From NCBI RefSeq assembly GCF_006345805.1, contig NW_021833588.1, forward strand, positions 12,463 through 76,462: a DNA stretch of 64,000 bases, written 5' to 3'. Of the stretch, positions 18,798 through 57,593 are shown piece after piece (position 1 is the stretch's first letter; each line of letters opens with the position of its first letter). Source of the stretch: Octopus sinensis. Lineage: Eukaryota. Below the pieces are notes generated by a model. The model was not told the DNA's origin and searched no databases. It saw only the letters and a program-made list of their open reading frames with translations. A program made the translations under genes and the position numbers.

Positions 18798-18821
18798 CTA
18801 GAATCTAGATGTTAATAACCA

Positions 18822-25436: not shown

Positions 25437-25509
25437 CACCCGATACGGGGCTCGAACCCGTGACCCTGGGATTAAGAGTCCCATGCTCTACCGACTGAGC
25501 TAACCGGGC
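25437..25509 (-). tRNA. tRNA-Lys(CTT)
   Basis: GCCCGGTTAGCTCAGTCGGTAGAGCATGGGACTCTTAATCCCAGGGTCACGGGTTCGAGCCCCGTATCGGGTG forms a canonical cloverleaf. Confidence 0.95.
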
Positions 25510-25574
25510 ACGCTAATAATATAGACCCTAAACTCTAATTGTCTTATTCTGATTTATTTATCTTATTAGTTATT

Positions 25575-27440: not shown

Positions 27441-28837
27441 CTAGTAAATAAACGGAATTATTTTATATGGGACTGCATCACAATACAAATTCCAAAATTT
27501 TTCATATTTGAGTCTGCACTTCTTCTCATCCCGGAAACTGCGATGTAAGAGCAAAACAAATAGAAAAATAAAATAAGAATATGGAAGTAAACTCCCAAAT
27601 CCACACGGCAGTGTCCAACAAAGTGCAGAACACAACTCGGCAAAATAATTAAAATGCCGACTCAAACTCCACCACCCACTGGCCAACAAAAGCGAGTGAC
27701 GAACTTGATTGTCGGTTGTGGTATAAGCCGCTTTTATAAACTTTGGTTTTTTTCTCCAAATAAAACAATTTCCATTTGTTTCTCTTACTTTTTTCTTTTG
27801 CCAATCAATATCATAATTAACAAAAATAGCACCAACTCCAAAAACTAAGAGACAGATTGAACAAAACCAGCCGAGATATACAGGTCTGGATACAAGATAC
27901 ATTCCACTCTAACTATTACGTAAAACAATACTAACCAGAGTGTACAGCGTAGGGACAAATACTAGACAACCCCAACATATATAAAACCCTGCTCGATCAA
28001 CTGCGATATCAATAGTCCTCATGTATCCAATCTCCCACCAAAAAAACTTGCTGATATAACACAACTGAAGAAATGAATTCACAAACATGGAATCAACAAA
28101 TCCATGTAACTCCCAACTCTTGATTGCAAAAATAAACACAAGTAGTCCCCAAACCATCATACCAAAACGACAGTTTGTGAATACCTAACCAACTTAACCA
28201 ATAAAAGAAATAAACTTTAATATCAATCCCCCATATCTTCGGATAAAGCTCAGTCCCCCAATAATAGTCAAATATCCAATTTCCAGATGGTCCACAGTCT
28301 TTATTGGTCGGGAAGTAAATTCCCTTGTAGAGAAGAATTAGGCAGAAGATCAAAGCAATGAAGTTGAGACTGAAATAAATTTGTTGAAGGTTGTCATAAA
28401 TTATTGTTACAGACAGTCCATTGGACTTTAAAAAATATTGTAGTCCAAAAAATGAGCAAATAGTAACAATATATTGCTTGAATCCATTATCCTTAAAGTA
28501 AGGTAAAAATCCACTTTCTGATGTATTTCCTGGTTCAAGTTTTCCTAAAATATAAATTTTCTCACATCGAACCGGGCAATATTCTCATTAAAACAAGACT
28601 GAACAGAATGTACCCAAAAATAATACAAAATGAGATTAATGTAAATGGCGGTCTTTGCCAAATTAACCACATCCAATCAATTCCATATTGTTTTATTAGA
28701 TCTGAAAATGTTCCATTTGTTTCAAAATTAATAAAACTAGAATATATGTCACCTAAATACCAGAGAGTTAAAGCAAATATGGGCGATGTAACAATAAGTA
28801 TACAAGGAACTGTTGATCTCCACAACCAATCACGCAT
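27441..28837 (-). CDS. DHCR7: 7-dehydrocholesterol reductase (ERG4/ERG24 family), multi-exon
   Basis: DYYWGTELYP, VFTNCRFGMM, DIAVDRAGFYICWGCLVFVP, LLASGWWSLSRHFNYFAE, RDEKKCRLKY..W..YC..VPYKIIP. Confidence 0.9.
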
Positions 28838-29052: not shown

Positions 29053-29713
29053 CAGCGGTTCTCAACCGTGGTCCCCAGAAAATTTTTAGTGGTCCCCAGG
29101 AATTTTCGAAAAATAAAAATATATTAAAGTTAAAACTAATTGTACAATTAAGTATAAATCAAAAACATTGAAATTAATCAAGCGGTTCTCAATCGTGGTC
29201 CCCAGAAAATTTTTAGTGGTCCCCAGGAATTTTCGAAAAATAACAATATATTAAATTTAAAACTAATTGTACAATTAAGTATAAATCAAAAACATTGAAA
29301 TTTTGAGTCCATTTTGAGTAAAACTGCATTGGAAGCAATACTTGCATTTCCCACTACTTATCACTGTGAAATGGCGATGTCGTGTCTGACTTTTCTAAAA
29401 ACAAAATATAGAAATAGACTACGGGTACAAGATGATATGCGAGTAGCTTTGTCGAACATAGAGCCTGATATAAGTAAAATGATTTTGAGCAAACAAGATC
29501 AGAAATCTCACTAAATTACTATTAAATTTCCTGTTATTTTCATAATGTTCATGTTATTTTTATAATAAATATTCGAACATGTCTAAACCTGGCCCTGACG
29601 AGGCCAAAAATTGTGCGCTAATACCAAAAAATGTTTATTTTATTTAAGGTGGTCCCCACAAAATTTTATAGTGCAAAAGTGGTCCCTAGTCTAAAAAAGG
29701 TTGAGAACCGCTG
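29053..29713 (+). mobile_element. Non-autonomous hAT (Buster) element with 8-bp TSD AGTTAGGT
   Basis: CAGCGGTTCTCAACC...GGTTGAGAACCGCTG, TSD at 29045-29052 and 29714-29721. The 5' ~130 bp is tandemly duplicated. Contains a transposase C-terminus (FPTTYHCE...KTKYRNRL). Confidence 0.92.
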
Positions 29714-31519: not shown

Positions 31520-34240
31520 AATGATTTTTTTCCTCGTTTTTGATTCGTTTTTAATGATTTTGGCTTAAATTTGGTTGGTTTATATTATATAGGCAATTTA
31601 ACGTAATTAAATATTTAATTATTGAGATTCTGGAGTCAATGAGTCTGGTCACTCGATCTTATTTTTCCTTGATTCATAAAATATCACAAAAAATGAAATA
31701 GGGCATTCGCTTTTTATTTCCACATTCGTTAAATGTACTTAAGTGTCCTGATAGGAGAAAAATTCATTTTCTATAAACGTATTGCTATTCTTAGTCGGTA
31801 GAGAGATCTTCATTTGGGAGAAGATTTATTTAGGGAAACTTTGTACCAAAGAATAATAAACTCTATTGACCTAAAAATTTATTTTAATGATACTCTTACC
31901 ATTAGTAAATACTCCTTTGACGCGTCTCCCATTTCCACGGTCGAGCCCAACAGGTACAGTTACAAAAGAAATTTTGTCCTTGGTTTCCCCTCATCAAATC
32001 CATAAAAATCACCAAAAATAAAGTATTAAAATAAGGACTTTCATTTTTATGCCGCCATTGTATGAAAGCATTTTAATATTTCCATTTTGTAACTTCATCT
32101 AAACGGGATTTAATTATTATTTGGCCGATGGGAAAAAATATGAGAAGTACGTCGGAGTCTGGAATAACACAGTTTTTGTCTCATTAGTAGTCGAAAGTTA
32201 AGAATAAAGGGACATTCTACTCGGAAGGTGTTCAGGCGGATTGGATCACTTATAATAAATCAGTGTTTAGCCTAACGAGTCTTTAACTATCTGTCAATAA
32301 CTATTTTCTTTTTTGGTGAAATTTATTTAAATACAGTTTTTAAAAATCAATATTTCAAGATATATTAAACTTGAGAAAAATCCAAATTATTCAATTAATT
32401 ATAGTGAAACCAATATAAGACAGTTTTTGCCAGTATCTTCGTTTTTGAATTATCAAAGACCAAAATATCTACGAAATGAACAAAACAGTCACATTTTGAA
32501 ATTACTGGGGTTTATTCTAGTTTTGTGTCACATTTATTCAAATTTAAACACTTATTGCGTCGAATGATACTTGACAGATAATTTTACGCCATTATTTCTG
32601 ATATAAATATCGACACAAGCTAATTTTAATTTTGATCAAATCAGGAATTTTTACATATAATAACTGTGATCCCCCAATCTGCCTAAAAATTAAAACAGCA
32701 AAACCAACAAAAGAAAATGAGTTTACCACATCTTAATCAGATACAAAGCAGCTACCCCCATAATATTTCAGTTGTTGATCATGATCAATTAATTCTTTCT
32801 TTCCAGGACAAAGGAAAGTGGAAAATAATCACTCTGTTAATTATAGAAATTTTAGTAGTCGCCCTATTTTCGAAAACGGTTTATAATTTTGATATTGTAG
32901 GAAAAACAAAAGGAATTACAAGATTCTATTAAATGAAATAAAACCGTTAATTAGAATGATCTTAAAAATGCGTTTTGGATAGCATAATGTGAATACAATA
33001 ATGAAAACCTGCAGCATTGTAGCCGCTAAAAGAGGTATTGAAGTACCTTGACATGTACTCCAAATAAAATAAGTCCTTTGAGGTCGTAGATAACTGTAAT
33101 TTGGAGAATATCCAGGCCAGTCTGAACAAATCTTGATCCATTTTAGCCAGGATTGAGTTTAGCAGTTTAATTTTATATTTGATAGAATGTGCAATTGTAA
33201 TTACATGGACAATTCCCCTCTAGTCAGTCATTACTGTTTGTTCGTACTACACCGGTCAAAAGTTTTAGTCATGTCGAGAAAAATATTCCCCGACATATTT
33301 AACGTACACATCTGAAAATGAATAATCAGGCATGTCTTTTTTTTGTAATGCTTTAAGAATATTCTTTTGCGATCATAAAAATATTAAATAATATGAAACA
33401 ACCTTTTTAATCCAAATAAGAAAATTCTTTATTTTCAGATAGAAAATATTATGTGACCAGAAAGAGGCAGAACAAAAAAAAATTGTTGTTATTTGTAATA
33501 AACAAAATTTTTTGTTAATTTAATTTGCGTTAGAAAATCATAATTCGTTTTTTTCAAGACAACTTGTCTTTACTGACTGATCAGACAGCATAACAAAGAG
33601 GATTACACACATCAGCTGTTTTTCAAGTTGATTAAAGGTATTCTTGGACTATCTCTTCTTGTTAAAGTATTTCCAGATTGGAAGAGCTCTAGTCATCAAT
33701 CTAGTAAACTGGAGTCTAATGTATCACCTTGTTTATAAATCACAGAAAATAACAAATTTCAGTTTTGGAAGTGTCAATAAAGTGCTTTTGACCGTGAAAG
33801 TTATTTCCTCACGTAAGCCAATGAAATGAGTTCAATACATCAGCATAAAATTCATTTAGGTTTTGAAAGATCAGAGTGATAATTATTCCTACAAATATTG
33901 GTCATTCAACTCTATAATTTCGGTACTTAGACAATGTCTTGATATTTGAGTGGCTTTTCAATATCGATTCACCTGGAAAAAATGTGAAACTTCTACTGCA
34001 AGCACCATTCGTTATTTCCAAGTAATGATTTAGTCTCAAAGAATTTTTCACTAAAAAAAGAAAGGGGCAGTAGACCTTTTCTAACATTCTCAAAATGAAG
34101 ATATATCCTTTGTATATACGTAAAATGACAAAAAAATCTATATTAATATTACAATATTTGGATTACGATAACACAAATTTAACGATAATGACAAAAAATC
34201 TCCCTAGCAAATTAACGATAACACAAACATTTTAATAAAG

Positions 34241-34312
34241 GCCTTGTTAGCTCAGTCGGTAGAGCATCGGCTTTTAACCCGACGGTCGTGGGTTCGAGTC
34301 CCGCACAAAGCT
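34241..34312 (+). tRNA. tRNA-Lys(TTT), aberrant (possible pseudogene or base-call error)
   Basis: A and B boxes are intact. The anticodon arm TCGG-CTTTTAAC-CCGA is 1 nt short, and there is a C:A mismatch in the acceptor stem. Confidence 0.7.
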
Positions 34313-34689
34313 TATTTTATTTATTTCAGAATAACTACCAAATTATGTTCAAATATTCACGAAATATACTGTTAATATTTCGTCGCTCCATAAAAATTTA
34401 TGTTTCATACATCATTTGTATTGATCAATTGATTAGATCAATTTTTCATATTTTTTGATACCATGGCCCCACTCAAAATGAGTAGCCATGTCTAAGTAAT
34501 GCTGGTTATACTGTTACTTCTGTCAGACAAAAGTACTTTTTAAGAAATTAGAAGGATGATTTAAAAACCTACACTGGAAAATAGAATAAAGAGAAGCTAT
34601 GCTATTCCAGCTAATCTAAGTGGGATCCCAAAAAGAGTTTTAATCTCAAATGATATAAGAGTTATTTGGACTAATTGACAATTCAATTC

Positions 34690-35100
34690 GTATTTAAATT
34701 TGTCGCTCGCTGCCGTTAACACTGTTTGCAGATTAATAAAGGAGAAGGAAACCTGTTGTTTGTATTAACACCGGAGCGATAAAACCGTGGATGATCTTAA
34801 ATACCTCGAATAGTTTGTGGATGCAACTGTTTCATTCAAGATGTAATAAGGAAGAGAAAGAACAAGGCTACCCAAATGTTGAAAGCGCTGATGCGATTCC
34901 AGCTGAAACCGGAAACGTTCTTATACGTATACTCTGCGTTGTATAGAACCCTTCCTGATCCATATGGATCTCAAGATTGTTCGGAAGCTGCGAAGGAAAG
35001 AAACATATTGATCTTTTGGAGAAAACGCGGAGATATGCCATTAAACTGGCACATGGTTGGACTTAAATCCAAACTAACCCCGGAGCGGGGAGGAGATTCG
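34690..35100 (+). mobile_element. LINE RT C-terminal fragment (frameshifted), in duplicated block
   Basis: Copy of 49772-50215 (KATQMLKALMRFQLKPETFLYVYS). Confidence 0.75.
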
Positions 35101-36405
35101 GTACTAAAGATCCATGTTGATAACAATGCTGGTGTCAAACAAGACAATCTAACAAATAATGAAGCTACTGACCAATTAGTGTTGCATGTCGTTTTTGATT
35201 ATGCTTATGGCGGAAAGTATATGGTGTGTCCCATAGAATTGACCCCAATCAGCAAACAACTTGTTTCTTCCGTCTCCTGGTTTCGTTTGGCCTTCTCTTC
35301 TCTCCCCCTTTTAATCTAGTGACGAGTTTGTTACATAAAATAAACTTCAATAGTCAATAGCCGTTAACTACCGGTGTTACGGCACTTGATACAAAATCGA
35401 TTTTGCGCGATCGTTCTCACCCTGTAGATCGTTCACAACCGGTGACAATTATTCTTACTAATATTAGTCATCCAACATTAATTTTTGGTACTTCTAATCT
35501 TGTCAAATGTATAAAAAGAGCTTCTGGTTGTTTCTCACCGACCAAGTTTTCATTTACAAAATGTTTCTTTTCCGTATAATTGTAGCTTACTCTGACAGAC
35601 TTTTGGCTTAGTTAGATAAGTCGTTCTTAAAGCCAATGAGGGCGAGTTCTCGTAAACTGGGCAAACTTTTGGGCGGCTTGCCCGATTTTTCGTCCATTTG
35701 TGACAATGTAGATCTTTTGGGTGTATTTTATTCGACTGTGAGATTATTTATTATAAAATATTGCACTTACTTAAATAAAATCTTTCATGGACCACTTTGA
35801 TAATTTTTTTTATTTTATGACTTATAAATGATACGTGGATGCATTATGCAGTTTCTTCCCATTTCCTACTTTGCAATAATTAAGGATTGATGCGGTCCAA
35901 AAAGTTACAAACCCATCAAGTTTAATCGGTCTGTGGGAACTCGAAAGTTGCATTATGATAGATATCCCAATACGCACGTCATTGTTTCCAGGACAACAAA
36001 ACCAATATTGTGTCACGATAAGGTCCCGGTTAATTTATTTAAGGGGGTATCCACTTTAATGAATACCTTCAAGTTTTACACTAATTTAAATTAATCTTTT
36101 CTTTTTTTCATATTTCTTTCGTTTTAATTTATTCAAGATAGCTTTATTATTAGAGTTTATAATTCTAATAAAAATTCATTTTAATTAGAAACTCTTTAGC
36201 AATGCGATTTATGCTAAAATGGTGGAACCAGCAATACTGGTGTTATAGTTCCAAATTTATAGCATGTTCTATTTAATAATAACTGGTACGGCTTTTGACT
36301 AATAAAACACTGCTAAAATTGAAATTTTCTGATTATAAATTGAAGACAATAATAAAATTAATCAAAAAACCGAATTATTAGTATGTTTAAGTATATTAAT
36401 GGAAT

Positions 36406-36931
36406 TCACTCTAATTTAATTTTGACATTAATTCGGTCATCGAAATTTGTTTTATGCGAGCGCGTCTTTATTCTAAATTTTGCGCAGGCGATTAGTTCCT
36501 TGCCGTCTAAAAACTTCCAAAAAACCTCTAGACTCATCGACTATATCATAAATATGTCAAAATACCGGAAAACGTATATTGGGAAGTTCCTTCTTATATT
36601 TAAAGGAAATTGTTTCGTTTTTTTCAGGTGGACAGTTCCCTGTGATATATCTACATGCTTCGGTAGTTTTAAGAATAGAAATGTGTGGTATTTGGATGTA
36701 TCCCTGTGTTTGTAACATTCCGACTGACTCCGCTAAAAATAAAATCTTATTTATACATGCTGTTAAATTTATTTGCATCTCCATTTTGTCTCCTCCATAT
36801 AGAATACATGAATTCATGTTGCAATTTGTAACATCAATGCTCGTTATGGATGATGATCCCCCACATTCTTGAAATGGTACTGGACCACAAATCACATTAG
36901 ACAAAATAAAAATGAAAATTGTTATTAACAT
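36406..36931 (-). CDS. NPC2: NPC2/ML-domain secreted lipid-binding protein, paralog A
   Basis: Signal peptide, FQECG, C-x4-C, ACRYITGNCPPEK and VFWKFLDGKELIACAKF. Two introns of 24 and 25 nt. Confidence 0.8.
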
Positions 36932-37106
36932 ATATAATCACAAAAGATGACCTAAATTATTGCAATGTTAATTTATTCACACGAATTTTATTATTATCAA
37001 AAAATATATAATTTTGATAAAAAATTCAATTTAATAAATAATTTTTAATGATGGAATCATTAATGTATCTACACTGGTCGCCAGATCTATTAACTATGTT
37101 CTATTG

Positions 37107-37312
37107 TAAGAATTAGAACACGTATTTAATTAGTAGCAGAGGATAAGATGGAATGGCAATTCCCAAGCAAGATGGCTATTGATATGCGTTGGAAAAGCCA
37201 TGTCCGTTCCCAATGATCATTTCTCCTTCTGCTTGCCAGGCCCCCCAGTTTAATAAGGAATTTTTTAGTTCTGGGACCGAGGACTCCCGACGTCTCCACT
37301 GCGATCGGGGCA
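37107..37312 (-). mobile_element. CRE-clade 3' stub with apparent 10-bp TSD
   Basis: AVETSGVLGP...WLFQRISIAILLGN, flanked by ATGTTCTATT on both sides. Absent from the homologous upstream region at about 19690. Confidence 0.7.
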
Positions 37313-38479
37313 ATGTTCTATTTGATAGTGCTTTATACTGTTTTTGACTAATAAAAAACTGTTACAATTAACCAAACGATTGAGATTAAGAGAATTTAAG
37401 AATTGGTTTAACTTTATTTTATTATTAGCAAATTAGCAAATCCGCGACAAAGTCAATTTAGGGAAAGCAAGGTTTTGATACACATCTTTACCAGACTTAT
37501 TATAAAGTGGTCGTGCAAATGAAAATTTATAAAATTAAAAAAAAACTTCCAATAAATGTCAATGGCCTTTAAAATTCATTAGAAATTTTCGTTAAATGTT
37601 GAAAATCTTCAGATCTATCATGTCTATTTGAAAACGTTCATTTAAACAGGAAGCAAAGGCATGGGGATTTATATCTCCAATCTACAATTAAATGAAATCT
37701 TGAGCTTTAAAAAGACGCGAAAATTTAGAATCTTCATAATTTTGAATGACTTTTTTGATAATCTCATTCTTTACAGTGAAATATCTTTGTCGAAATTCAT
37801 ATTCAATTTTATTTAATACTCCGTGCGAAAACTCGTGTAATGATTTTGCCAAGAATTCCATTTCGGTTTCATTATCGAGGGGTATGGCTAACTTAGGATC
37901 ACGTGATTTAAGATAATGTCAGTATGTCAGTAAATTTATTTTTTGAAATTTGATATTCTCCCCACTCTTTTACAAAACCCAGGTGGAGAAAATTCAGAAA
38001 TTTCTTCGGTGGGCATACCTTTTTGTCGGTTGATGGTCTTAAAGTTTTGTAAACGCATTCTTCTGTTTTTGCCAACTTTCTCAAACTTTGTTTTGTCTAC
38101 GCTTTAAACTTTAACATCTTGCTTTCGGTAAGACCGTGAAATCGAATTCTTAATACATTTTTCTAAATTTTACCGCCGACAATACATGAGATAAGTAACC
38201 ATGGTAAGTGGATAAATTAGCACAAACATACAGCGCCTACAAACATATTCTAGAATCAAACTAAAGATTGAACAGTCTTATAATCTGAACAAGTGACCCC
38301 ACAAATAAAACATCTAGATTCCTATAGTTAATGTGTCAGGTAACGACATAACAAATCCACCAACATAGCATAAGATCCTCTTAATGGATGACTTTCCGTT
38401 TAGGAAAGAGAGTTAAATATAATTCTGAATGTTTTCGTCACTCAAAATTCTGCACTCTTTTATTGGATTGTAAATTTCG

Positions 38480-39410
38480 TTTAGAACCTTTTTACAAAAT
38501 GGAGAATTAAGCTAACATTCAACCAGCACATAATCGGAGGCGTCAAAATGGAAAGGGGTATACTCCAGGGTGATTCCTTGTCACCTCAAATTTTTGCAAT
38601 GGACCCCCTCAGTCGAATTCTGAACGCAAAGTACCCAAAAGTTATTATGGATAATCAAGACCACGGTTTTATTACATACACAACAAACCAACTACTTTTC
38701 ATAGATGACCTAAAAATATTTTCACGAAAAGAAAATACAATGATGAGTATGATGAACGAGGTAAATAATTTTTTCGCAGCCGCCGGACTAAAAAATGTCG
38801 AAAAGTCCGCAACTAATTTGGGTGACCTTTGGTTGAAAGCTAAATTGCTTGATGGGATAGATGGTTACAGATACCTCGGAGTGGTAGAAGAATAAATTAA
38901 GTGAAGTATTGAAAAGCGAAATACTGAACACATTCTTTGGATAATTAAAAAAGAAGATCGTCAATCTCTTGAAGACAAAATTAAACTCTTACAACTTATT
39001 TAAAGCCATAAATAAGCACGCATTATCCTTCCACAACTACTACATTGGGCTTGTCAATATTTAGCTAACAGAATTTGAACAGATTGACATAAATGTGTGC
39101 AAGATTTTTGTACAACATCGAATTAACCTGAAACCTGCAAATAAAGAAAAACTTTACCTCCCAAGAGGCCAACTTGGAGAGGACTCGTATCCACTGTCCT
39201 AAAGCATCCAAGAAACTGGGACCTTGATTTGAACTTGCTGAGGGAAGTGCAGAAGAACCGCTTGATTTACTAAATAAGGAAAAAATCATTGCATGCAATT
39301 CTCAACGAGTATTTAAATGATCTCAACGTCTATATTGATGAGTTCCTTTCATTGGAGGGGCTTCTGTGTCTAATACAGGACCGTAGCCTATTTTTCGACA
39401 ATGCTGGAAC
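38480..39410 (+). mobile_element. R4-like non-LTR RT pseudogene
   Basis: RGILQGDSLSP...LLFIDDLKIF...YRYLGVVE, with multiple stops and frameshifts. Confidence 0.85.
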
Positions 39411-39755
39411 ATTGTAAATTTGTTTTTTAATATTTTAAGAGTCAATAGACATAAGAAAGCCCCCTGGTCTAGCATTTTGAAGAGTGATGGAATTGTTCAA
39501 CAATATCGGGTTATTAATATTTGATATAATTTTGAATATTTAGTTGGTGAGACTAGGAAACGATTATTTGACTCGAATACCAACAGACTATCTCAATATT
39601 AAAGGATTGGAAGATTCGTTTTAATCTGAATTTTACTAATTACTTGAATTTCATTTCCTCTAATACGTTTTTTTGATATATTCTGATTAGTATATATTAA
39701 AAAAATTTAGTTTAAAAATTAAAATAATTTATTTAACGTTTACTTGTTTGTTACA

Positions 39756-40138
39756 ATGAACGAAGTACACCGAATGGCTGGTAGGACCTTTTTTGGTCGA
39801 AAGTCATTAAAAGGACGTTATGAGGTTTTTTAATTATAAAAATTTAGTTTATTCCCATTACTGTCCTTATGTTTACGTCTTTTGGTCTTGCTACATTCGC
39901 TATAACACGTTATTTTTCTCAAAACCCTGAAGTCATGTATTATTTATTTAAAAATATATATCAGGGTGAAGACATAAGAAGGTACCATGGTCGGGCACAC
40001 TCAAGAGTGATGGTACTGTCCGTCAGTATCAAGTTGTCTTATACGTCTAATATATAGTTTTTACGTCTTGGGGATGACTACATCAGAAGAATGCCACAGA
40101 ACCGGCCAGAGATCGAGGGACTCGAAGACATCTTTTAG
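39756..40138 (+). CDS. NDUFA4: NDUFA4/COXFA4-like mitochondrial subunit, 3 introns
   Basis: FIPITVLMFTSFGLATFAITRYFSQNPEV...VPW...QYQFLRLGDDY...RPE parallels NDUFA4 LIPLFV...NPDV.W..NPEPW..QYKF..DYSK..RPDF. The acceptor of intron 2 is ambiguous. Confidence 0.6.
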
Positions 40139-40342
40139 TTGTAGTCGGAATAGTTGTACTAATATAGAATTCTTACTAACGTTCAATTTTTTAAACGTCT
40201 AAAATAATAGATAATTTTTCTTGTTTTTATAAGTGAAAATAGGTCAGATTTAAATCCAAATTATTGTGAGTGTGCTAATTTCGAAATATAGACTTTTTTG
40301 AATAGCATAACTATTTTATGTAATAAGTGTTAAAAGAATAAT

Positions 40343-40440
40343 CGATGGGAGGGCCAGCTCGACAATCGCCAAACTGTTCCCTCGTATAATGGCAGTCGAG
40401 AACCGCTGGAAAGGCCAGTCCACTTCCCGACGATCGTGAG
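40343..40440 (-). mobile_element. CRE-clade 3' stub
   Basis: DRREVDWPFQRFSTAIIRGNSLAI. Confidence 0.6.
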
Positions 40441-40539
40441 TGCTTTATATATAAAGTATAATGTTATATGTAATACATTTTAGAAAATTGTGTCAATATT
40501 TGTGTGTTATTAAACAAAACATAATGTTCAATATTCAGA

Positions 40540-41400
40540 ACATTAATTGTAAAATGCTACATTCGGTGCTATTCAAATGCATGGACGAACAAAATGTTGA
40601 TCTAGTTACGTCCTCAGAGTGGTTTTTGAAGAAAATAATGGTTCAAGGAGTGAAGAATTGTACACTCTCTTGCAGGATAGGAATTTGTTTTTCACATCCA
40701 TTGGATCTTTATGCAGTCACTGCAAAAAATGCAAGAAAAACGATTGATGATTTGGCACGCAGTGCGGGCAAATGTTAAACATTGATTATCTGTAAGACAC
40801 AGTGAAATTCATCTTCATTTGTATCGACTCTATGGTATTAAAAGAGGAAGGGAAATAAAGAAAAATTCTATTCTGTCTATAATATCGACGCAGAATGTTA
40901 AATCCGAGTTGATACGTCAATTATGACAGAAACAAAAGTTAAATCGAAGTTGGAATCACTTCACAAAACAGCCTCAAACAAGTCGAAATCGAGAAATTCC
41001 ATAAATATGATCTGCTTGCAAACCAACTTTCGATTCTTTATGATACAAAGGCAAAGATTATCCCGGTTGTCTTGACGTGGGAAGGCGTTGTTTCAAGACA
41101 CTTCAAAAACTATATGGACAAATTATCAATTGAAAAAGCTTACATTCATTTAGTCTGTTGTTTTAAAAAGGACTCTAGAAAGCATGGTAGTTGAACACTG
41201 ACATGGAGTGAATGTATCTGGTGAAGAATACACCTCTGTTGCTTACTAGCTTGCAGAAGTGGCATGCTGACGTGACACGTCGGTGAAAGCTATGAGACAA
41301 TTATAAAATTTATCTGATAGGAAGATGGAAAGTGAGGAAGAACTGGGTGCAAACTCTTCTCCTAAAAGGAGAAGAGAGATTTCCAATAATCGGGACTGAT
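40540..41400 (+). mobile_element. R4-like non-LTR C-terminal (zinc-knuckle/REL) pseudogene
   Basis: LLQDRNLFF and IIPVVLTWEGVVSRHFKNYMDKL, with frameshifts. Confidence 0.75.
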
Positions 41401-41459
41401 AATCTAAATTAAATAGCTTAAGTAATCTGTCTGAAGGTTTATTTGTGTCGGTAAGCCTT

Positions 41460-42978
41460 CAATATAAGATCGCCATTTTAAATTTGTGACACATGGCACA
41501 GATATGTCCCTATAACACATCTACAATTGATTTCCCAGGACTGAATCCACTTTTACTAAACGACAGATAGTCATTGAAAGAATCTTTAATGTTGTCAAGT
41601 GGTACGAACAACAAGATTTATCTTATTGTGTTCAGGAATATGCCAAATGTTGCTAAGAAGACCTCGCAGTTTGTTAGGTGTATAAAAGAAATCAACGTTT
41701 CGCTGTGCGCTATAAAATTCAAAGAAAACTACATTCCTAGCCCTGATTATTTATGAATTCAGGTCATAATTTAGTTAACATTTCCGTGTATTATCTGTTA
41801 GTTAAATACAATTTAATTTAATTATTAGTTTATTAATCGAGCCATAAGGAGGATGACTCCAAACCAGAAAATTATATGTGTTGGCAAAGTTACTAAAATT
41901 TATAAATAAAATCTCAACTTGACTTTTTGTCAATTACTTTCTCTATTACGTAGTCGAATTTATCCTAAATGTTAGAAATTAATATAAATACAATAAAATT
42001 ATCGACACTTGAAAATATATTATCATTTAATGTTTTATTTTCGGCGATTATTAAACCAACAAAAATGAGAAAGACAATCATTTTGATTTAACTGCACAAA
42101 ATGCTATATTTATACCATTATTCATAATTAGCACACTTACGTCTAATTTTACTGAGAAATATAAAATAGTGAATTATTTTTTCCGAACCAACGTCCTCTG
42201 CTTATTAGGATCCCCGACAATCTGTTCCTGAGTAACCAATCCCTTCCTCAGTCGAACTTCCTTCACAAGTTTGTAACCCAGTTGATCATCTCCACACTCC
42301 TTCCCCACTACCTCCCAATGTGAGAACTTGAACTGACAACTACACATCCCCCTCGTCCTACTTCTCATCTCCTCCTCAATCCCGAATGAATTGACCATCG
42401 GAATATACCAATCACACATAAACACACTCAGATCATACAAGTCCTCACTGACCACCCTTCCTCCTCTCCTCCCAATAACCCCTTTCACTTTCCCTGACCA
42501 TTACTCTCCATAACTACCAATCAGCCAACCCGGCACTCGGATACTCCCCAACAACACAGGCTGCACTAACCGTACTCCACATGATGACACCAATACACCC
42601 CAAATGGCATTCCTCACATCACAACTGACCTGTCCTGAGTGATGTGAGTGTCCTAACTGTCGAATTGTGCAGCATAATCCATGAAGGGGTTTCTCACACA
42701 GGGGGCCTGCCTCCATTGCTAACTTAAAACCATTAATCTAACAAATACAACATTCTGACATACAATTGAAGACAGAGTCGACTGATTCACCCCATCCATA
42801 CCATTTATGAGAATATTTGTCGAATAAACAGCACAAATCTGCTTTGATGTTACCGATTACCTTATCAGAATCAATCATTTCACACTCCTTCCTCAATAAA
42901 TCGACACCAATGGAGTAGTAAGTCAACACTCAGACAACCTGAATGGGCAGTTGTTCCACACTTGAATCCAATAATCAA
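41460..42978. repeat. Direct segmental duplicate of 55280-58398 (without the Tc1 insertion)
   Basis: Colinear match from GATCGCCATTT...AATTTGTGACACATGGCACAG to CACTTGAATCCAATAATCA. Confidence 0.92.
42174..42978 (-). pseudogene. EFL1: 3' partial duplicate of EFL1
   Basis: Near-identical to 57594-58398, with small indels near the 42510-42540 splice site and no G domain. Confidence 0.88.
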
Positions 42979-43676
42979 TAAACGGTATCTTCTTCCTGCT
43001 CCTCCTGCCTTACAATCATGACATTCACTAACCCTCTATTCGTGGGCAAACCACATAGCCACCCACTGCCTGAATTTTCTCCTTGTGATCACATTTTGCT
43101 TTTCAGGTCGAATAATTATTGCAAAAATAGTCCTGTCCCTTCTCCGTTAGACATATTTCATATTTAAGTTCATCAGCCGGCATCTCTCGACAAATGGGAC
43201 AGGTGTAGCCCAGACTAGACACCACTTCTGCCTCCATTTGATTCCTTATATTATCGCATTAGTCATCACTCTCTCATCACCCGACCAAGCACACTCCCAA
43301 CACTTCAAAAATAATTCCCCTTCTTTGGTAGACACATTGCAGCAAGTATAAAGGTTTTGACTGTAACACCGAGGACAGAGAATGTTTTCGTCGTAATATG
43401 TCACGAGCGCTAGACGCGAACAATCTAATTCACTCAATGTCAAATTAACTTATTTTATTAATAAATCCAGCACAATTATTATTTCTAACTGTAATCTAAC
43501 TTGTTGGCATGTACTTTCATTGCTGATCCATCACTATTTTCCTCATTCACAAAATTGTTAGACAATTTGTCGCATAATTCTTGTGAATGCAAATCTTTTA
43601 AGTAATTATGAAATAAATACTATATCTCCAATGGGTGATTCATATTTTGACACATGCATTTCCTTCTTTCTGTTTA

Positions 43677-46408
43677 TCTTAATAATAAAATGGTATGGTG
43701 TGTGTCTGTCTGTCTGTCTGTCTGTGTGTGCACACCAACTTCAAATTGGCAATACGATGTCCTCGACTTACATGATAAGGTCCTTAAAACCTTCCCCCCA
43801 AAAAAAATTAAAAAAAAATTTTCTGCATTTTGGTTAAAATGAACAACTACGATGTCCTCGACTTACATGATGAGGTCCTTAAAACCTTCCCCCCAAAAAA
43901 ATCAAAAAAAAATTTTCTGCATTTTGGTTAAAATGAACAACTACGATGTCCTCGACTTACATGATGAGGTCCTTAAAACCTTCCCCCCCAAAAAAAATTA
44001 AAAAAAAATTTTCTGCATTTTGGTTAAAATGAACAACTACGATGTCCTCGACTTACATAATGAGGTCCTTAAAACCTTCCCCCCCAAAAAAATCAAAAAA
44101 AAATTTTCTTTCTGCATTTTGGTTAAAATGAACAACTACGATGTCCTCGACTTACATGATGAGGTCCTTAAAACCTTCCCCCCAAAAAAAATTAAAAAAA
44201 AATTTTCTGCATTTTGGTTAAAATGAACAACTACGATGTCCTCGACTTACATGATGAGGTCCTTAAAACCTTCCCCCCAAAAAAAATTAAAAAAAAATTT
44301 CTGCATTTTGGTTAAAATGAACAACTACGATGTCCTCGACTTACATGATGAGGTCCTTAAAACCTTCCCCCCAAAAAAAATTAAAAAAAAAATTTCTGCA
44401 TTTTGGTTAAAATAAACAACTACGATGTCCTCGACTTACATAATGAGGTCCTTAAAACCTTCCCCCCAAAAAAAATTAAAAAAAAAAATTTCTGCATTTT
44501 GGTTAAAATGAACAACTACGATGTCCTCGACTTACATGATGAGGTCCTTAAAACCTTCCCCCCAAAAAAAATTAAAAAAAAATTTTCTGCATTTTGGTTA
44601 AAATGAACAACTACGATGTCCTGGACTTACATGATGAGGTCCTTAAAACCTTCCCCCCAAAAAATTAAAAAAAAATTTTCTGCATTTTGGTTAAAATGAA
44701 CAACTACGATGTCCTCGACTTACATGATGAGGTCCTTAAAACCTTCCCCCCAAAAAAAATTAAAAAAAATTTTTCTGCATTTTGGTTAAAATGAACAACT
44801 ACGATGTCCTCGACTTACATGATGAGGTCCTTAAAACCTTTCCGCCAAAAAATCAAAAAATTATTTTCTGCATTTGATTAAAATGAACAACGTTAATGTC
44901 CTCGACATTCATGATGAGGTCCATTAAAAATCTCACGTATTAAGAATATCCTTGATGAAAACGACAGCGAGAATATTAACAATGATGAACTCCCAATTAT
45001 TCGCGATAAAGAAATTCAATTCATCTTATGATTTTCTCTTTAAAATTAAATGCATATACCATTCAAAATTAAACCTATTATCATATTTGACTTTGACAGA
45101 ATGTGCAATTACAGATTGCACGACCTTGAATAGAGTGTGCAATTAACAGATTTTGAAAAACACTTTGATAGTTGAAACCACATTAGCAAAATCATTAACA
45201 CAATTTACCACCAATTGACAGCGCAATCAGAAGAATTTGCGTAAAAATATTAACTATTTAGTTAAGTTTTTCGTAAAGATAAAATTTATTTTCGGTATGC
45301 CTCTTTTCCTAAACTTTTTTATTATTCAAAAATAATTTTTTCAATAGATAACTGAAGGAGGGAAGACGACCTTAAGAAAAGAAGTTTTTCGTAAAGATAG
45401 AATTTATTTTCTGTATGCCTCTTTTTTCCTAATATTTTTTATTATTCAAAAATAATTTTTTAAATAGATAACCGAAGGAGGAAAAACGAAGCTGAAGAAA
45501 AAACGGTCAGCTTAAGGTAATTAAATCTTTTTTGTGTGTCGCTTTTTTGGCTGCTGCTACTCTGCCTGCCGCATCTCCGGCTGCCCCATCTCCGCCAGTG
45601 GTTTGTCTAATCAAGGTCACTAAGCTAAATCTCCGGACTATAAAGGCTCTTAAGCATTATCTTAACTGGCTGTTAAAAAAATTAGACAGGTTGTTGCCGT
45701 GGCGGCAGAGATTTTTTTTGTTTATACTTTTTTACAAATTTTTAAAGTTTTTTCATTTCTTTTGTTTTTAAATTATTTATTTTTATTTGTTTTTTTTTAT
45801 TTTTTTTGTTATTTTCTACAAATTCAACCGGATTGAATTTTTAAACTCCTTAGATCCCTCTGGAATGCCGAATCATCTTTTAAAGTTAAAGATAGGCGTT
45901 TCAGTGGTTTTATTACAAAATCTTGCGCCACCTAAATTATGCAACGGAACGAGGTTAGTTATCAAAAATTTGATGGCTAACGTAATAGAGGCGACGATAT
46001 TCACAGGTAAGTATAGAGGTGAGGATGTTTATATTCCACGAATTCCGATAATTTCTGATGAATTACCATTTAGATTTAAAAGGCTGCAATTTCCTTTGAG
46101 GATGAGTTTTGCAATGACAATAAACAAGGCCCAGGGACAGTCATTAAAGGTAGTTGGGTTATTTTTAGAGAGTGAGTGCTTTTCACATGGACAGCTGTAT
46201 GTGGGATGCTCGAGGGTAGGCAGAAGAGAAAATTTATTCATATATGCCAAGGAAGGACAAACGACAAACATCGTTTATCAACAGGCGATAGAATAGGGTT
46301 ACATTAAACCAGGTAGTTTTATACATCTACATAAACTTATAGTTGTTTGATGAAACAGGCCCTCCGCAGGAGCTAGGTCGCGGTGAGCGAAGCGAGCTGC
46401 CGAGCTAG
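43677..46408 (+). mobile_element. Non-autonomous Helitron, copy B
   Basis: A|TCTTAATAATAAAATGG...GCCGAGCTAG|T. The helicase C-terminus [14 protein letters not shown]...[10 protein letters not shown] (about 45830-46296) keeps a natural stop. Confidence 0.92.
43750..44880. repeat. Tandem array, about 95-bp unit, 12 copies plus one degenerate monomer, inside Helitron B
   Basis: ACGATGTCCTCGACTTACAT recurs about every 93-99 bp. Confidence 0.95.
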
Positions 46409-46559
46409 TTCTCTTATAATACAGAGAATTTATTTTACTTGAATTCGAATTTATCTTTAGTTGAACTAAAAGCATTTATTGTTAGTTTCGGAAGTGTATT
46501 GAAGTTCAAAATTCTATTCCGCTGTATAATTGAAGAAACTTGCAGAGACCAAAATGCAT

Positions 46560-46740
46560 AAGAATATAATGAATAGTCGCCACTTTTATTTTTAAGATTC
46601 CTTGTAAACGCATATTTTGAATATACGTCTATTACAGAGATGAACCAAGAAAAATTGTTGTTTTCATTTTTAAATCTACAGAATAAACTAATTTTATACT
46701 GTTTAAGATCAAGAATCATCATACTGTTTTACGGAAACTT
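46560..46740 (-). mobile_element. Integrase (rve) fragment
   Basis: ILDLKQY...FSWFISVIDVYSKYAFTRNLKNKSG. Confidence 0.65.
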
Positions 46741-47149
46741 AAAATTTGCAGATATTGCATTTTTTAACAACTTTGCGAATGATCTGTCGCTTCAATATAA
46801 AAAATCTTAGGCTTCCGAAGCATTATGTCCACAATGATTGGCTTCATGAATTTCACGTGCAATTATTTTTATCTCTTCTAAGCTGTTTACATTTTCTAGG
46901 ACGTTTACATTTCTAAGATATCGTTTATTATTATTAAAAGCACTCCCGAGAAGTCATAAAACTAATTAAGCTTCCCTTGTGCCGCGTGAACAACAATACT
47001 ATCCCACAACCTTCTTCAGGTGTCTCTAATTTTTGCCAATTCTCTCAGGTTGTCGAGTCAGTTCCAGAGATGTCATTGAGGTGGGTCGAAAATATTGAGG
47101 TGGGTCGAAAATATTTCAATTCTCTCAGGTTGCCAATTCTCCCAGTTCG

Positions 47150-47760
47150 TGGAGACATCGTCCTTTGATACTGTCCAGCAGATATTGTCGTGGGACAAGC
47201 GCTGCCAGCTAGGCATATCAAGGAACGATGCAGGCGATATTTCCGAAGCGGAGATTCTGGCAGCGATCTCCCGAAGTATGAACACTGCGGCGGGTCTGGA
47301 TCGGATCCCTATTGCCATCTTTAAGAAGGCCCCGCCGTTGTTGATCACCGCCTTACAAGTCTTATTTAGCGGGAGCTTGCGACTTGGGATGATTCCCTCT
47401 AGGTGGAAAGTGGCTGAGGTAATCCTTATCGAAAAACCCAGGATGCCTCATGATGTCCACGGGCGATACATGCCTATTTCCTTGCTTCCCGCTGTATTTG
47501 AAATTTTAGAAAGGATCATGCTCCGAAGGGAGGGTCGTTCGTGTGGAGACTGCTTATGGAAGGTGTCCTCTGAGATGAAGTGCGCCCTCCAGAAGGAAGA
47601 GTGTGGTATGTTAGTTAGTCTTGACATTGAAAAGGCCTTCGACTCGGTGTGGGGAGCTCTCAGAAACCCAGAAATTGTCCCTCAAAGGCCTCCCTGAGGT
47701 CTTAGAGAAGATAATGTCTAGGTGGCAGGTAAGGCGGTAAGTCTTAGTTTGCGGCTGAGA
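47150..47760 (+). mobile_element. LINE RT N-terminal fragment with internal deletions
   Basis: TAAGLDRIP, WKVAEVILIEKP, RYMPISLL, SLDIEKAFDSVW. Confidence 0.85.
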
Positions 47761-48020
47761 GGCAAGCGTGTGTGCGGGACTGAACAGGCAGGAATGCCGA
47801 AGGTCTTAATATACCCTCTACTAACAGCCTTTTTAAAATAAAAATTTTTGTTCGTTCATAGTCAATAGATTTGGCGACCAGTGTAGTTACATTAATGATT
47901 CCATCATTAAAATTTTTTTATTAAATTTATTTTTTATTAAAATTATATATTTTTGATAATAATAAAATTCGTGCGAATAAATTAACATTGCAATAATTTA
48001 GGTCATCTTTGTGATTATAT

Positions 48021-48556
48021 ATGTTAATAACAATTTTCATTTTTATTTTGTCTAATGTGATTTGTGGTCCAGTACCATTTCAAGAATGTGGGGGATCATC
48101 ATCCATAACGAGCATTGATGTTAAAATAAAATGCGACGCAAAGTGTTGGATGTATGGAGCAGTCATACTGGTGATACGAATAAATTTAACAGCATGTATA
48201 AATAATATTTTATTTTTAGCTAAGTCAGTCGGACTGTTAAAAACAACGGCATACATTAAAAACCCACTCTTTTATTTTTTTGACCATATGAAAGCATGTC
48301 AACTTGCCAAAGGGCACTGTCCACCTGAAAAAAACGAACAAATTTCCTTTGAATTTACCAGCCGACTTAGCAGAATTATATTTAAAGAGGTATTTTTGAT
48401 ATATGTATGATATAGTCGATGAGTCTCCAGCAAAAGGCTAATCGCATGAATCTAGATGTTATTTGGGAATTTTTTGACCACGATGTAGTAATCGCCTGCG
48501 CAAAATTTAAGATAAAGTCGATATTCTATGACCGAATTAATGTCAAATTACAGTGA
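48021..48556 (+). CDS. NPC2: NPC2/ML-domain protein, paralog B
   Basis: First 34 codons identical to paralog A, same intron positions (24 and 26 nt), open to TGA at 48554-48556. Confidence 0.8.
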
Positions 48557-49771
48557 ATTCCATTAATATTCTTAAACATACTAACAATTCGGTTTTTTGA
48601 TTAATTTTATTCAGAAAATTTCAATTTTAGCAGTGTTTTATTAGTCAAATGCAGTACCAGTCACCATTAAATAGAACATGCTATAAATTCAGAACTATAA
48701 CACCAGTATTGCTAGTTCCACCATTTTAGAATAAATCGCATTGCTAAAGAGTTTCTAATTAAAATGAATTTTTATTAGAATTATAAACTCTAATAATAAA
48801 GCCACCTTGAATAAATTAAAACGAAAGAAATATAAAAAAGAGAAAAGATTAATTTAAATTAGTGTAAAACTTGAAGGTATTCATTAAAGTGGATACCCCC
48901 TTGAATAAATTAACCCCAGGACCTTATCGTGGACAACAATATTGGTTTTGTCGTCCTGAACAACAACCGACGTGCGTATTGGGATATCTATCATAATGCA
49001 AACTTTCAAGTTCCCACAGACCGATTAAACTTGATGGGTTTGTAACTTTTTGGACCGCATCAATCCTTAATTATTGCAAAGTAGGAAATGGAAGAAACTG
49101 CATAATGCATCCATCTGTAATCATTTATAATTAATAAAATAATCAAAAATTATCAATAGTTGATATTTAAGTAAGTGCAATTATTTTATAATAAATAATC
49201 TCACAGTCCGAATAAAATACACCCCAAATAATCTACACTTGTCACAAATGGCCGAAAAAATTCGGGCAAGCCGCCCAAAAGTTTGCCCAGTTTACGAGAA
49301 CTCGCCCTCATTGGCTTTAAGAACGACTATATTATAACTAAGCCAAAAGTCTGTCAGAGTAAGCTACCATTATACGGAAAAGAAACAATTTTGTAAATGA
49401 AAACTTGGTCGGTGAGAAACAACCAGAAGATCTTTTTATACATTTGACAATATTAGAAGTACCAAAACTATAATGTTGGATGACTAATATTAGTAAGAAT
49501 AATTGTCACCGGTTGTGAACGATACCAGGGTGAGAACGATCGCGCAAAATCGATTTTGTCTCAAGTGCCGTAACACCGGTAGTTAACGGCTATTGACTAT
49601 TGAATTGTTTATTTTCTATGTAACAAACTCGTCACTAGATTAAAAGGGGGAGAGAAGAGAAGAGCCAAACGAAACCAAGGAGACGGAAGAAACAAGTTTG
49701 TTTGCTGATTGGGGTCAATTCTAATGGGACACCAGATGTCCCTTCGATAAAAATAACGACCCCTTGCACCA

Positions 49772-50215
49772 CTATTTATTTAAGTGATGCAACAGTTTTT
49801 CAATGGATCGTACCGATCCCTCCAGCTCTGGGGTTAGTTTGGATTTTAAGTCCAAGCCATGTGCCAGTTTAATGGCATATCTCCGCGTTTTTCTCAAAAG
49901 ATCAATATGTTTCTTTCCTTCGCAGCTTCCGAACCATCCTTGAGATCCATAGATCAGGAAGGGTTCTATACACGCAGAGTATACGTATAAGAACGTTTCC
50001 GGTTTCAGCTGGAATCGCATCAGAGCTTTCAACATTTGGGTAGCCTTGTTCTTTCTCTTCCTTATATACATCTTGAATGAACCAGTTGCATCCACAACTA
50101 TTCCGAGGTATTTAAGATCATCCACGGGTTTTATCGCTCCGGTGTTAATACAAACAACAGGTTTCCTTCTCCTTTCATTAATCCTGCAAACAGTGTTAAC
50201 GGCAGCGAGCGACAA
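49772..50215 (-). mobile_element. LINE RT C-terminal fragment
   Basis: DDLKYLGIVVD...VYSACIEPFLIYGSQGW. Confidence 0.8.
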
Positions 50216-50679
50216 ATTTAAATACGAGTCATTAAGTTTTCAAACCTAATAAACTCTAATTTCTGCCCTTTGGACAAAAAAACAAGCGTGTCGTTTCGTT
50301 TGAGCTACTCTTAAATACTTCAAACAACAAAATGTATATATCTCATAGACTTGCTTAAAGAATGACAAATAATTACTGAATTAAGTATTATATAATAAGA
50401 ATCGTTATACTTTTTAATAGAATACATTTCAAAGAAATGTTTTGATACATTTTCCAATCAAAAAAGTATGCTTTTCTGTTACTAAAAACCTTCACTATAA
50501 TGTGTCATTTTGTAAGCAAGTCTTCTAGTCTCCTTAGAAATCCCCAACATATTTAGTGATTAGAGACCATCTTTTCTGATATTTGAGACTCCAGGTCACA
50601 ATGGGGGGAAACTAAATGACTGACAACTCAAAGATGAGAAAGCCAAGATATTAAGAAAAATTTATTTAAAGAAAAAGTG

Positions 50680-54510: not shown

Positions 54511-55506
54511 CCCAGGACCGCCTGCTCACCGTGAGACGAAAGACCGACAGTCGGAAAACGTGTGCTGGCCTGTCAGGAGGAGGCCAGAAAAGTCGGACGA
54601 GGTCGCTGGGGGGGTCTCTCCCGGGAGATTGTGCGGCGAGTACTGTGTGTGGTGGAGGACAGTCAGTCCTCTTGTTGGCCAAACAAGGAAGGGACTGTTC
54701 TGGTCTCATTTGGCCTGATTGGTAGGCTTGGTCGAACACGTCGTGAATGCATCCAAAATGAGAATTCTGTTATTAGAGGACTGGCAGTATGTTTATGTCA
54801 CTCTCCACGGAATACGCGTGTGTTGTCCCCGACTGTTGAATGTACTGGTTTTGTACTGACTGAGAGGAACAAGACAAGGCGTTTATGGTGGCTTGTCTTT
54901 TGCAGAGGAAAGTGACTAGTGGCATATTTATCTTAGAAAAGTGATGTAGCCATCAGTCTCATATCGTCTACAATGAGGACAGTGGGACCACCAATGTTCT
55001 CAGGATCGACCGAGACTGTAGGCATTTATCACTTTAGTTATTGATTCAGTATTCACTAGTTTTCTCAGATTTCTTAATACGGTTTCAAGATAGATAAAAC
55101 AGACGACATCGAATCACTTTAGGGGGTTCCAATATTTGTTTTAAAAGACCTTGAATATATGAATCCAATCTTAACTGGCAACTCTACCAGTTACCAAACC
55201 ATTCTGATCGAGAAATCATCAAGAATAGTCTTAAAGACATTTCTTTGCGGATCGTGTTAAATACCCTGCTCATATGAATGTTCAATATTGAGATCGCCAT
55301 TTCAAATTTGTGACACATGGCACAGACATGCCCCTATACTACATCTACAGTTGATCTCCCAGGACTAAATCCACATTGACTCCGACAGATAGTCATTGAA
55401 AGAATCTTTAATGCTGTCAAGTGCTACGGACAACAAGATTTATCTTATTGTGTTCAGGAATATGCCAAATGTTGCTAAAAAGACCTCGCAGTTTGTTAGA
55501 TGTATA

Positions 55507-57102: not shown

Positions 57103-57593
57103 TAGAAGAAATCAACGTTTCGCTGTGCGCTATAAAATTCAAGGAAAACTACATTCCTAGCTCTGCTTATTTATGAATTCAGGTCATAATTTAGTTAACA
57201 TTTCCGTGTATTATCTGTTAGTTAAATACAATTTAATTTAATTATTAATGTATTAATCGAGCCATAAGAAGGATCACTCCAAACCCGTAAATTATATGTG
57301 ATGGAAATGTAACTATAATTTATAAATAAAATCTCAACTTGACTTTTTGTTAATTTTTCTCACGATCAAGCCTGCGGATGTATTCTAAATGTTAGAAATT
57401 AATATAAATACAATAAAATCATCGACCCTTGAAAATATTTTATCAAATAATGCTTCATTTTGGGCGAATATTAAACCAGCAAAAATGAGAAAGACAATCA
57501 TTTTGATTTAACTGCGCAAAATGCTATATTTATACCATTATTCATAATTAGCACACTTATGTCTAATTTTACTGAGAAATATAAAATAGTGAA

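Follow-up and report, generated by a model that had tools for sequence, protein, structure and literature searches.

NPC2-type proteins are beta-sandwich lipid and sterol carriers, and the subject of this report is a pair of NPC2-like genes of the ML-domain family, referred to here as A and B, which lie in an inverted duplication on a 64-kb stretch of contig NW_021833588.1 (the window). In arthropods, lineage-specific expansions of NPC2/ML genes have been accompanied by functional divergence and episodic positive selection (arachnid NPC2s, PMC13151251; review, PMC5810286), and neofunctionalisation away from the canonical sterol carrier has been proposed for them, as we propose it for B. The A/B pair belongs to the same domain family and appears to have followed the same course, a duplication and then positive selection on the derived copy. 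It differs from the arthropod cases in that the host is not an arthropod, has introns of 24-26 nt and is plausibly a dicyemid or myxobolid parasite; in that a whole-domain pairwise omega of 2-3.6 is seen between very young copies, rather than selection at a few sites on a branch; and in that the changes are not confined to the pocket entrance. An expanded non-canonical NPC2-like family of 32-35 copies has been described in another parasite, the liver fluke Clonorchis sinensis, in which, as far as the abstract and outline of the paper tell, multiple divergent genes are clustered on scaffolds and most copies are without the bovine cholesterol-binding residues (PMC6979364); that abstract and outline contain no dN/dS analysis. 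In the 64 kb studied here, no more than two intact copies and a single pseudogene can be seen.

A likeness of another kind, in evolutionary mode and not in membership, links the pair to venom families of unrelated fold. In the conotoxins, conserved non-coding DNA and a conserved signal peptide go together with accelerated change of the mature part. The same holds for snake venom genes, where the cysteine scaffold is fixed while replacement in the mature part is accelerated (PMC6062510), and segment switching (ASSET) has been described in snake toxins (PMC2711939). Between A and B, the flanks differ by 6.9%, codons 1-34 by 0% and the core by 26-31% (rest of exon 1 and exon 2, respectively), and a hypervariable mature region in which the rate of non-synonymous change exceeds that of synonymous change (dN > dS) is built on a conserved cysteine scaffold; the replacement of codons 35-44 resembles the segment replacement of the venom genes. 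Unlike those families, the present one is tiny as far as is visible in the window.

The explanation that we favor, with a probability of about 0.77, is a recent inverted duplication followed by positive selection mainly on B and by neofunctionalisation. A recent inverted segmental duplication created the pair, the arms of which have since diverged neutrally by about 7-11%, after which positive selection would have pushed amino acid replacement across most of the mature domain at about 3-4 times the neutral rate. Replacement occurred mainly on the B lineage, with in-frame indels in loops, remodelling of the entrance-rim segment and a change from charged to hydrophobic residues on one strand. 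The DNA next to the promoter stayed fixed, and in the protein the same is true of the putative signal peptide and the first strand, of all six cysteines and the motif CPPEKNE, and of a C-terminal tail. Neofunctionalisation of B, giving a secreted or endolysosomal lipid-binding protein of altered ligand or partner specificity, is the most likely outcome. The genes and the duplicated arms are placed as follows.

36406-36931, reverse strand: gene A, an NPC2-like ML-domain gene of 158 amino acids, the less derived copy
36931-36757, 36732-36566 and 36540-36406, reverse strand: exons of the gene A model
36756-36733 (24 nt) and 36565-36541 (25 nt), reverse strand: introns of the gene A model
48021-48556, forward strand: gene B, a paralog of A of 161 amino acids, the fast-evolving copy
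48021-48195, 48220-48389 and 48416-48556, forward strand: exons of the gene B model
48196-48219 (24 nt) and 48390-48415 (26 nt), forward strand: introns of the gene B model
34688-37098, reverse strand: arm 1 of the inverted duplication, comprising gene A, the 167 nt before its ATG and 1.7 kb of DNA downstream
47857-50227, forward strand: arm 2 of the inverted duplication, comprising gene B, the 164 nt before its ATG and 1.7 kb of DNA downstream

These gene models coincide exactly with the coordinates given for both genes by a first-pass annotation of the same DNA. Each gene has three exons with open reading frames (ORFs) and intact GT-AG introns. The presence of two small introns is supported by the alignment with NPC2, which is ungapped across the intron 2 junction and, next to the intron 1 junction, has nothing more than NPC2 insertions of one or two residues.

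Both proteins match the Pfam family PF02221 (ML, E1_DerP2_DerF2), A with 43.4 bits and B with 24.5 bits at a gathering cut-off of 22.7, in agreement with the ML domain of NPC2 type first assigned to them. Over its full length, A can be aligned with NPC2 of human, bovine and ant origin (phmmer against the PDB, E = 2e-6 to 8e-6), and its cysteines C23, C37, C42, C85, C92 and C133 each have a counterpart among the six of human NPC2. All six are kept in B, where the loop reads C-x3-C instead of the C-x4-C of A, and three disulfides of the NPC2 pattern are thus predicted from the cysteine alignment for both proteins. Besides the full-length alignment and the six aligned cysteines, A and B have in common with canonical NPC2 (human 5KWY and 6W5V; bovine 1NEP and 2HKA) the motifs PVxFxxCG at the mature N-terminus, CPxxK, and W-x-L/F of a late strand. 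However, identity to the canonical proteins is only about 25%, and these lack the C-terminal extension of about 10-20 residues (...DRINVK...) that is present in A and B. By inspection and alignment, a hydrophobic N-terminus of 16 residues (MLITIFIFILSNVICG) directly precedes the residue aligned with the start of mature NPC2, a putative signal peptide that would direct both proteins to secretion or to the lysosome. Of the bovine cholesterol-binding residues F66, V96 and Y100, the first is matched by S77 in A and by Y77 in B and the other two by L108 and F113 in both proteins, in an alignment of about 25% identity whose register is approximate; since the residues at these three positions differ, A and B are treated here as non-canonical NPC2-like proteins. 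Lipid binding is presumed for both, as are the target of adaptation and any role related to a host. B is the more hydrophobic protein (grand average of hydropathy 0.03 versus -0.31 for A) and has 17 aromatic residues versus 12.

The spliced protein A found no match in an index of 5.8 billion proteins, and a metagenome scan for relatives found none. An exhaustive HMMER search with the contiguous ORF of A returned only five matches, of which the real relatives are NPC2-like proteins (24-35% identical) from a trematode, a barnacle and a springtail, the trematode protein being the best genuine ML-domain match in the library (35% identity). Another match from that search, P0004, was discarded as spurious, being a translated tandem repeat.

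The 2.4-kb inverted duplication described in the first-pass annotation is real. Its arms are 10,758 nt apart, separated by a transposon-rich spacer, and the 1.7 kb downstream of the gene in each arm include a decayed retroelement-like ORF. Across the arms, non-coding DNA is mismatched at 128 of 1848 aligned sites (6.9%; Jukes-Cantor distance 0.073) and carries 36 indels in addition; the non-coding DNA, earlier called nearly identical, is therefore similar (about 93% identity) but not nearly identical. Divergence of the flanks is patchy, ranging from 1 to 10% per 100 nt. As neutral reference we used the 1.7-kb downstream flank, including the co-duplicated transposon relic, which is a better yardstick than intron 1. 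The latter indeed differs between A and B at one of 24 positions only, as had been noticed, and intron 2 differs at 4 of 25 positions and by one indel. Since 20 of the 24 positions of intron 1 are conserved even against a much older pseudogene of the family (copy C, below), intron 1 is probably constrained by splicing and makes a poor neutral yardstick, and it was rejected as reference for that reason.

Two further features lie within or beside the duplicated region. A 1.3-kb piece has been duplicated into the A-B spacer with 95.8% identity (41458-42981 versus 55281-55506 and 57103-58401); it includes the 3′ part of an EFL1/Ria1 gene, and the gene-fragment copy is located in DNA with a strong GC skew. 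A tRNA-like gene is found at 34240-34313 on the forward strand (Rfam tRNA, 57 bits), about 375 nt beyond the outer limit of arm 1; ARAGORN reports a four-base anticodon (ttta) and no amino acid for it.

The coding sequences of A and B were aligned by codon by hand, lining up the cysteines and the evident indels, and the alignment was checked against both coding sequences. Two zones of very different divergence can be distinguished.

36830-37040 on the reverse strand (A) and about 47912-48122 (B): conserved 5′ block, with about 110 nt of promoter and 5′ untranslated region (UTR) and codons 1-34 (putative signal peptide and first strand)
36406-36829 on the reverse strand (A) and 48123-48556 (B): hypervariable core, from codon 35 to the stop; proportion of non-synonymous differences (pN) 0.282, of synonymous differences (pS) 0.152

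The 5′ block has a single mismatch in about 212 nt, which at the flank rate has a probability of 4e-6 (for one mismatch or fewer), and the first 102 coding nucleotides are identical in both genes, as had been stated before. In the core, by contrast, 58 of the 116 alignable codons specify different residues, and nucleotide difference amounts to 26% in the rest of exon 1, 31% in exon 2 and 16% in exon 3. Of the 116 core sites at each codon position, 34 differ at position 1, 32 at position 2 and 23 at position 3, and the 37 codons with a single difference comprise 34 non-synonymous and 3 synonymous changes, so that the remark of the first-pass annotation on very few synonymous changes holds. Two local patterns singled out there were also recovered, the run of seven consecutive changed codons (codons 47-53, GGA GAC AAA ATG GAG ATG CAA in A versus GCA GTC ATA CTG GTG ATA CGA in B) and the block TGT CCA CCT GAA AAA AAC GAA that is identical in both copies (codons 92-98). 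The run was rejected as evidence in itself, as shuffling yields one of that length with P = 0.34 once half of the core codons differ; the longest run of changed codons is nine (shuffle P = 0.08 for at least nine). All six coding indels between A and B are multiples of three (3, 3, 3, 27, 15 and 6 nt), as against 3 of the 36 indels in the flanks.

Four parts of the core have been heavily rewritten. In the cysteine loop after strand A (codons 35-44), nearly all residues are replaced, with compensating +3/-3 indels. In the strand GDKMEMQ, which became AVILVIR, both inward and presumed outward positions have changed, the outward ones from charged to hydrophobic. The segment aligned with the NPC2 entrance rim has gone from PHISILKTTE to PLFYFFDHMK, and in the loop before the last strands B carries a nine-codon insertion. 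An approximate map of the lipid pocket was obtained from a HMMER alignment to human NPC2 (about 25% identity) and the 24 cavity-lining residues given in PMC13050278. On this map, changes are not enriched in the pocket, 9 of the 24 cavity positions being altered versus 48 of the 101 others (Fisher p = 0.49), and tuning of ligand specificity, as suggested in the first-pass annotation, is not singled out by these data.

Counting by the Nei-Gojobori method (NG86) gave for the core pN 0.282, pS 0.152 and a dN/dS of 2.07 (Fisher one-sided p = 0.022), with a bootstrap 95% interval of 1.22-4.18 and 0.3% of replicates at or below 1. In pairwise Goldman-Yang likelihood (GY94), omega was 3.2-3.65 under three codon-frequency models (likelihood-ratio test against omega = 1, p = 0.003-0.007); under F3x4, the core gave an omega of 3.65 (p = 0.004), with dS 0.108 and dN 0.395. 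The result does not depend on the codons near indels, since removal of all those within two positions of an indel left omega at 3.55 (p = 0.009), and an automatic MAFFT protein alignment gave the same picture (ratio 2.06). A dN/dS above 1, expected in the first-pass annotation, was thus borne out with a careful alignment. Compared with the non-coding DNA, core pN is fourfold higher (0.282 versus 0.069; Fisher p = 6e-22). Core codons that specify the same residue in both genes have only 3 synonymous differences in 37.3 synonymous sites (0.08; 95% confidence interval 0.017-0.22), about the flank rate. Because both this rate and the likelihood estimate of core dS (0.108) are in the range of the flanks (0.073), the excess is specific to replacement changes, and positive selection is probably what drove the divergence of A and B.

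A third member of the family, overlooked in the first-pass annotation, was found by tblastn and with a custom hidden Markov model (HMM), and these searches yielded two intact copies and one pseudogene in the window altogether.

18268-18797, reverse strand: paralog C, a pseudogene of the ML-domain family that shares about 71% identity with A
18798-19540: insertion of 743 nt resembling a miniature inverted-repeat transposable element (MITE), with terminal inverted repeats (CTAGAATCTAGAT...), between the conserved upstream region of C and its ATG

C has frameshifts and in-frame stops, and its last cysteine codon has changed to Tyr. Beyond the MITE-like insertion, its upstream homology resumes at 19538-19662; identity in the upstream region is 84%, against 71% for the gene itself. 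A second, partial copy of the MITE-like element lies at 6341-6740 (95% identical), and a two-unit tandem repeat of 127 nt at 29054-29302, the unit of which starts with AGCGGTTCTCAACCGTGGTCCCCAG, resembles the subterminal sequence of the element at C. At 15301-17372 and 43750-46241, a composite element is present in two copies of opposite orientation (95-97% identity). It joins a Pif1-helicase (Helitron-type) fragment to an array of 11-12 units of a 95-nt satellite. The first copy lies downstream of C at a distance of about 0.9 kb and the second upstream of gene B at about 1.8 kb, and the element might have had a part in spreading the ML genes.

Using C as outgroup to polarise the differences between A and B, 39 non-synonymous and 4 synonymous changes were assigned to B, and 13 and 0 to A. 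The pooled non-synonymous excess is significant (binomial p = 0.007). B thus accounts for about three quarters of the polarisable changes, while the replacement rate of A is near or slightly over the neutral expectation, and the spectrum of polarised substitutions has no single dominant type. The first-pass annotation had proposed diversifying selection on a family or repertoire. The part concerning selection stands, as dN/dS exceeds 1, but a repertoire is more than the two intact copies and the pseudogene in the window can show, and change is mostly in B; since the change is asymmetric, it looks like directional divergence of one new copy, B, rather than a diversifying repertoire.

Several points weigh against selection on B as the explanation. 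The analysis concerns one pair with 116 alignable codons, and exons 2 and 3 taken singly do not reach significance (p = 0.10 and p = 0.30, respectively). The NG86 core pS of 0.152 is nominally above the flank value of 0.069 (p = 0.015), and because of this the flanks could have been partly homogenised by gene conversion. A conversion tract may also account for the 5′ block and its single mismatch in about 212 nt. As to polarity, C is a distant and decayed outgroup, and 33 differences remain unpolarised. The gene models contribute a point of their own, as intron 1, with its 24 nt, is in frame and stop-free and its removal is presumed; its retention would give a seventh cysteine. Finally, the PF02221 match of B is marginal, just over the cut-off, and this together with the hydrophobic gains of B at positions that face outward in NPC2 could reflect loss of the ancestral function.

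Some of these points lead to gene conversion as an alternative, in which A and B would be old paralogs whose flanks, introns and 5′ exon were recently homogenised through conversion from one inverted arm to the other, or in which the core of B was imported from a distant paralog, so that the contrast between flanks and exons would be one of age and not of selection. The sharp heterogeneity along the genes, from 0 of 102 differences at the 5′ end to 26-31% directly after, would be explained in this way, as would the patchy divergence of the flanks (1-10% per 100 nt), the stronger conservation of the 5′ block relative to them, and a core pS about twice the flank value (exon 2 alone having a dS of 0.20). 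However, dN exceeds dS 2- to 3.6-fold with the core's own dS as the clock, and age alone therefore cannot explain the pattern; conversion would alter the dating of the pair but not the conclusion on selection. Residue-conserved core codons, moreover, differ at only 0.08 per synonymous site, and intron 1, situated within the divergent zone, differs at 1 of 24 positions. As for a donor, the sole old paralog present, C, is at a pS of 0.39 from A in the core (pN 0.38), far above the A-B value, and no source of B-specific 14-mers was found elsewhere in the window. Because the synonymous divergence between A and B is 0.11-0.15 and not about 0.4 as between A and C, the core of B was probably not imported from an old paralog of this kind, and the conversion tract from a distant paralog that the first-pass annotation had considered does not fit, with a core dS of 0.108 close to the flank value of 0.073. 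For the 5′ block, constraint on the promoter, 5′ UTR and signal peptide is an equally good explanation as a recent conversion tract, because the same region is also the best conserved one with respect to C (84% versus 71%). We regard a conversion mosaic as unlikely on the whole.

That B is a relaxed or decaying copy, an incipient pseudogene in which replacements are neutral, might be suspected from its lower Pfam score (24.5 bits versus 43 for A), from the hydrophobic residues that took the place of charged ones on a strand face directed outward in NPC2, and from the fate of copy C, which shows that the family does yield pseudogenes. It is nevertheless very unlikely, because decay cannot outpace the neutral rate and core pN reaches 0.28, fourfold the value for non-coding DNA (Fisher p = 6e-22), with synonymous sites not accelerated. 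B is also stop-free, with intact splice sites and all six cysteines, and the frame is kept by six of six coding indels versus 3 of 36 in the flanks. The probability is lower again for a mutational process targeted to exons and acting without selection, such as clustered multi-nucleotide events, transcription-associated or templated mutagenesis or a 'segment switch'. Such a process is called to mind by the runs of seven and nine changed codons and by codons 35-44, whose almost complete replacement with +3/-3 indels recalls the ASSET of snake toxins (PMC2711939), but it would affect synonymous sites too, and yet position 3 has changed least and single-difference codons are non-synonymous over synonymous at 34 to 3. 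Run lengths are as in shuffled codons (P = 0.34 for at least seven, P = 0.08 for at least nine), the polarised spectrum is without a dominant substitution type, and no template was found in the window. Least credible of all, at the level of a very slim chance, is an assembly artefact in which the arms would be collapsed or mis-joined haplotypes or copies; although repeats and transposons abound in this region (Helitron-like elements, satellite, LINE fragments), the arms are 7% different with many indels and have distinct unique sequence at both inner and outer ends, and the result on coding versus non-coding divergence is independent of the relative orientation of the arms.

The small size of the introns is a feature of the whole genome and not only of A and B, since the EFL1/Ria1 gene has introns of 25 and 26 nt as well, its conserved GTPase domain (60380-60560, reverse strand; AHVDHG/KTTLVDSL...IAGE/) being split by them at GT-AG boundaries. 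Among animals, introns below 30 bp are reported only from myxobolid myxozoans and the dicyemid Dicyema japonicum, both parasitic (PMC13644364). A host of dicyemid or myxobolid type is therefore plausible, judging only from the 24-26-nt introns, and so is the parasite put forward in the first-pass annotation; GC content, repeats and gene density agree loosely. The Dicyema genome has 36.7% GC, 49% repeats and 5,012 genes in 67.5 Mb, and its published figures are the closest to the GC content, repeat load and gene density of the window (PMC6736024). The supplements of the Dicyema genome paper contain no ML, NPC2 or PF02221 entry, and NPC2 or ML-domain genes are not mentioned in the main text of the Myxobolus honghuensis paper. 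A further-reaching idea, tentative and rather doubtful, is that the pair belongs to a hypervariable family of secreted ML-domain proteins, of cassette type and spread over the whole genome, in such an ultra-short-intron parasite (dicyemid or myxobolid). Constraint or gene conversion would maintain a constant, uniform 5′ cassette (promoter, signal peptide, first strand), and selection where host and parasite meet would make the remainder of the beta-sandwich diverge, for the scavenging of host lipids or for interference with lipid-based recognition by the host.

Whole-domain pairwise dN/dS values well over 1 between young duplicates are uncommon and mark genes under real adaptive pressure. Positive selection on NPC2-like expansions in arthropods and large NPC2-like expansions in flukes are already known, and the pair does not constitute a new category; its novelty lies in the host lineage, in how strong the pairwise signal is and in the internal controls. 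The locus contains its own neutral yardstick, in the form of a co-duplicated transposon relic and a dated pseudogene, and makes a clean teaching case for selection versus gene conversion. Should the genome be that of a dicyemid or myxobolid, about whose host-interface or lipid-acquisition molecules almost nothing is known, A and B would be concrete candidates.

The window as a whole is AT-rich (about 34% GC) animal genome DNA in which POU-homeobox, importin-alpha-like, DHCR7-like and EFL1/Ria1 genes are found among many transposon relics, namely reverse transcriptase fragments, an integrase, a DDE transposase and Pif1-helicase (Helitron-type) fragments. Four ORFs of the window, looked up by exact sequence, matched no public contig, and the matches of the DHCR7-like and EFL1 fragments were to proteins that are either distant or anonymous. 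Ordinary tRNA genes are present for tRNA-Gly(CCC) at 14762-14832 and tRNA-Lys(CTT) at 25436-25510. An armadillo-repeat (importin-alpha-like) exon lies at 24427-24795 on the forward strand, and a gene with a POU domain and a homeodomain at 63348-63926 on the reverse strand. The exon at 27441-27902 on the reverse strand resembles 7-dehydrocholesterol reductase (52% identical to the best match), and the proximity of a sterol reductase to sterol-carrier-like genes may be a coincidence.

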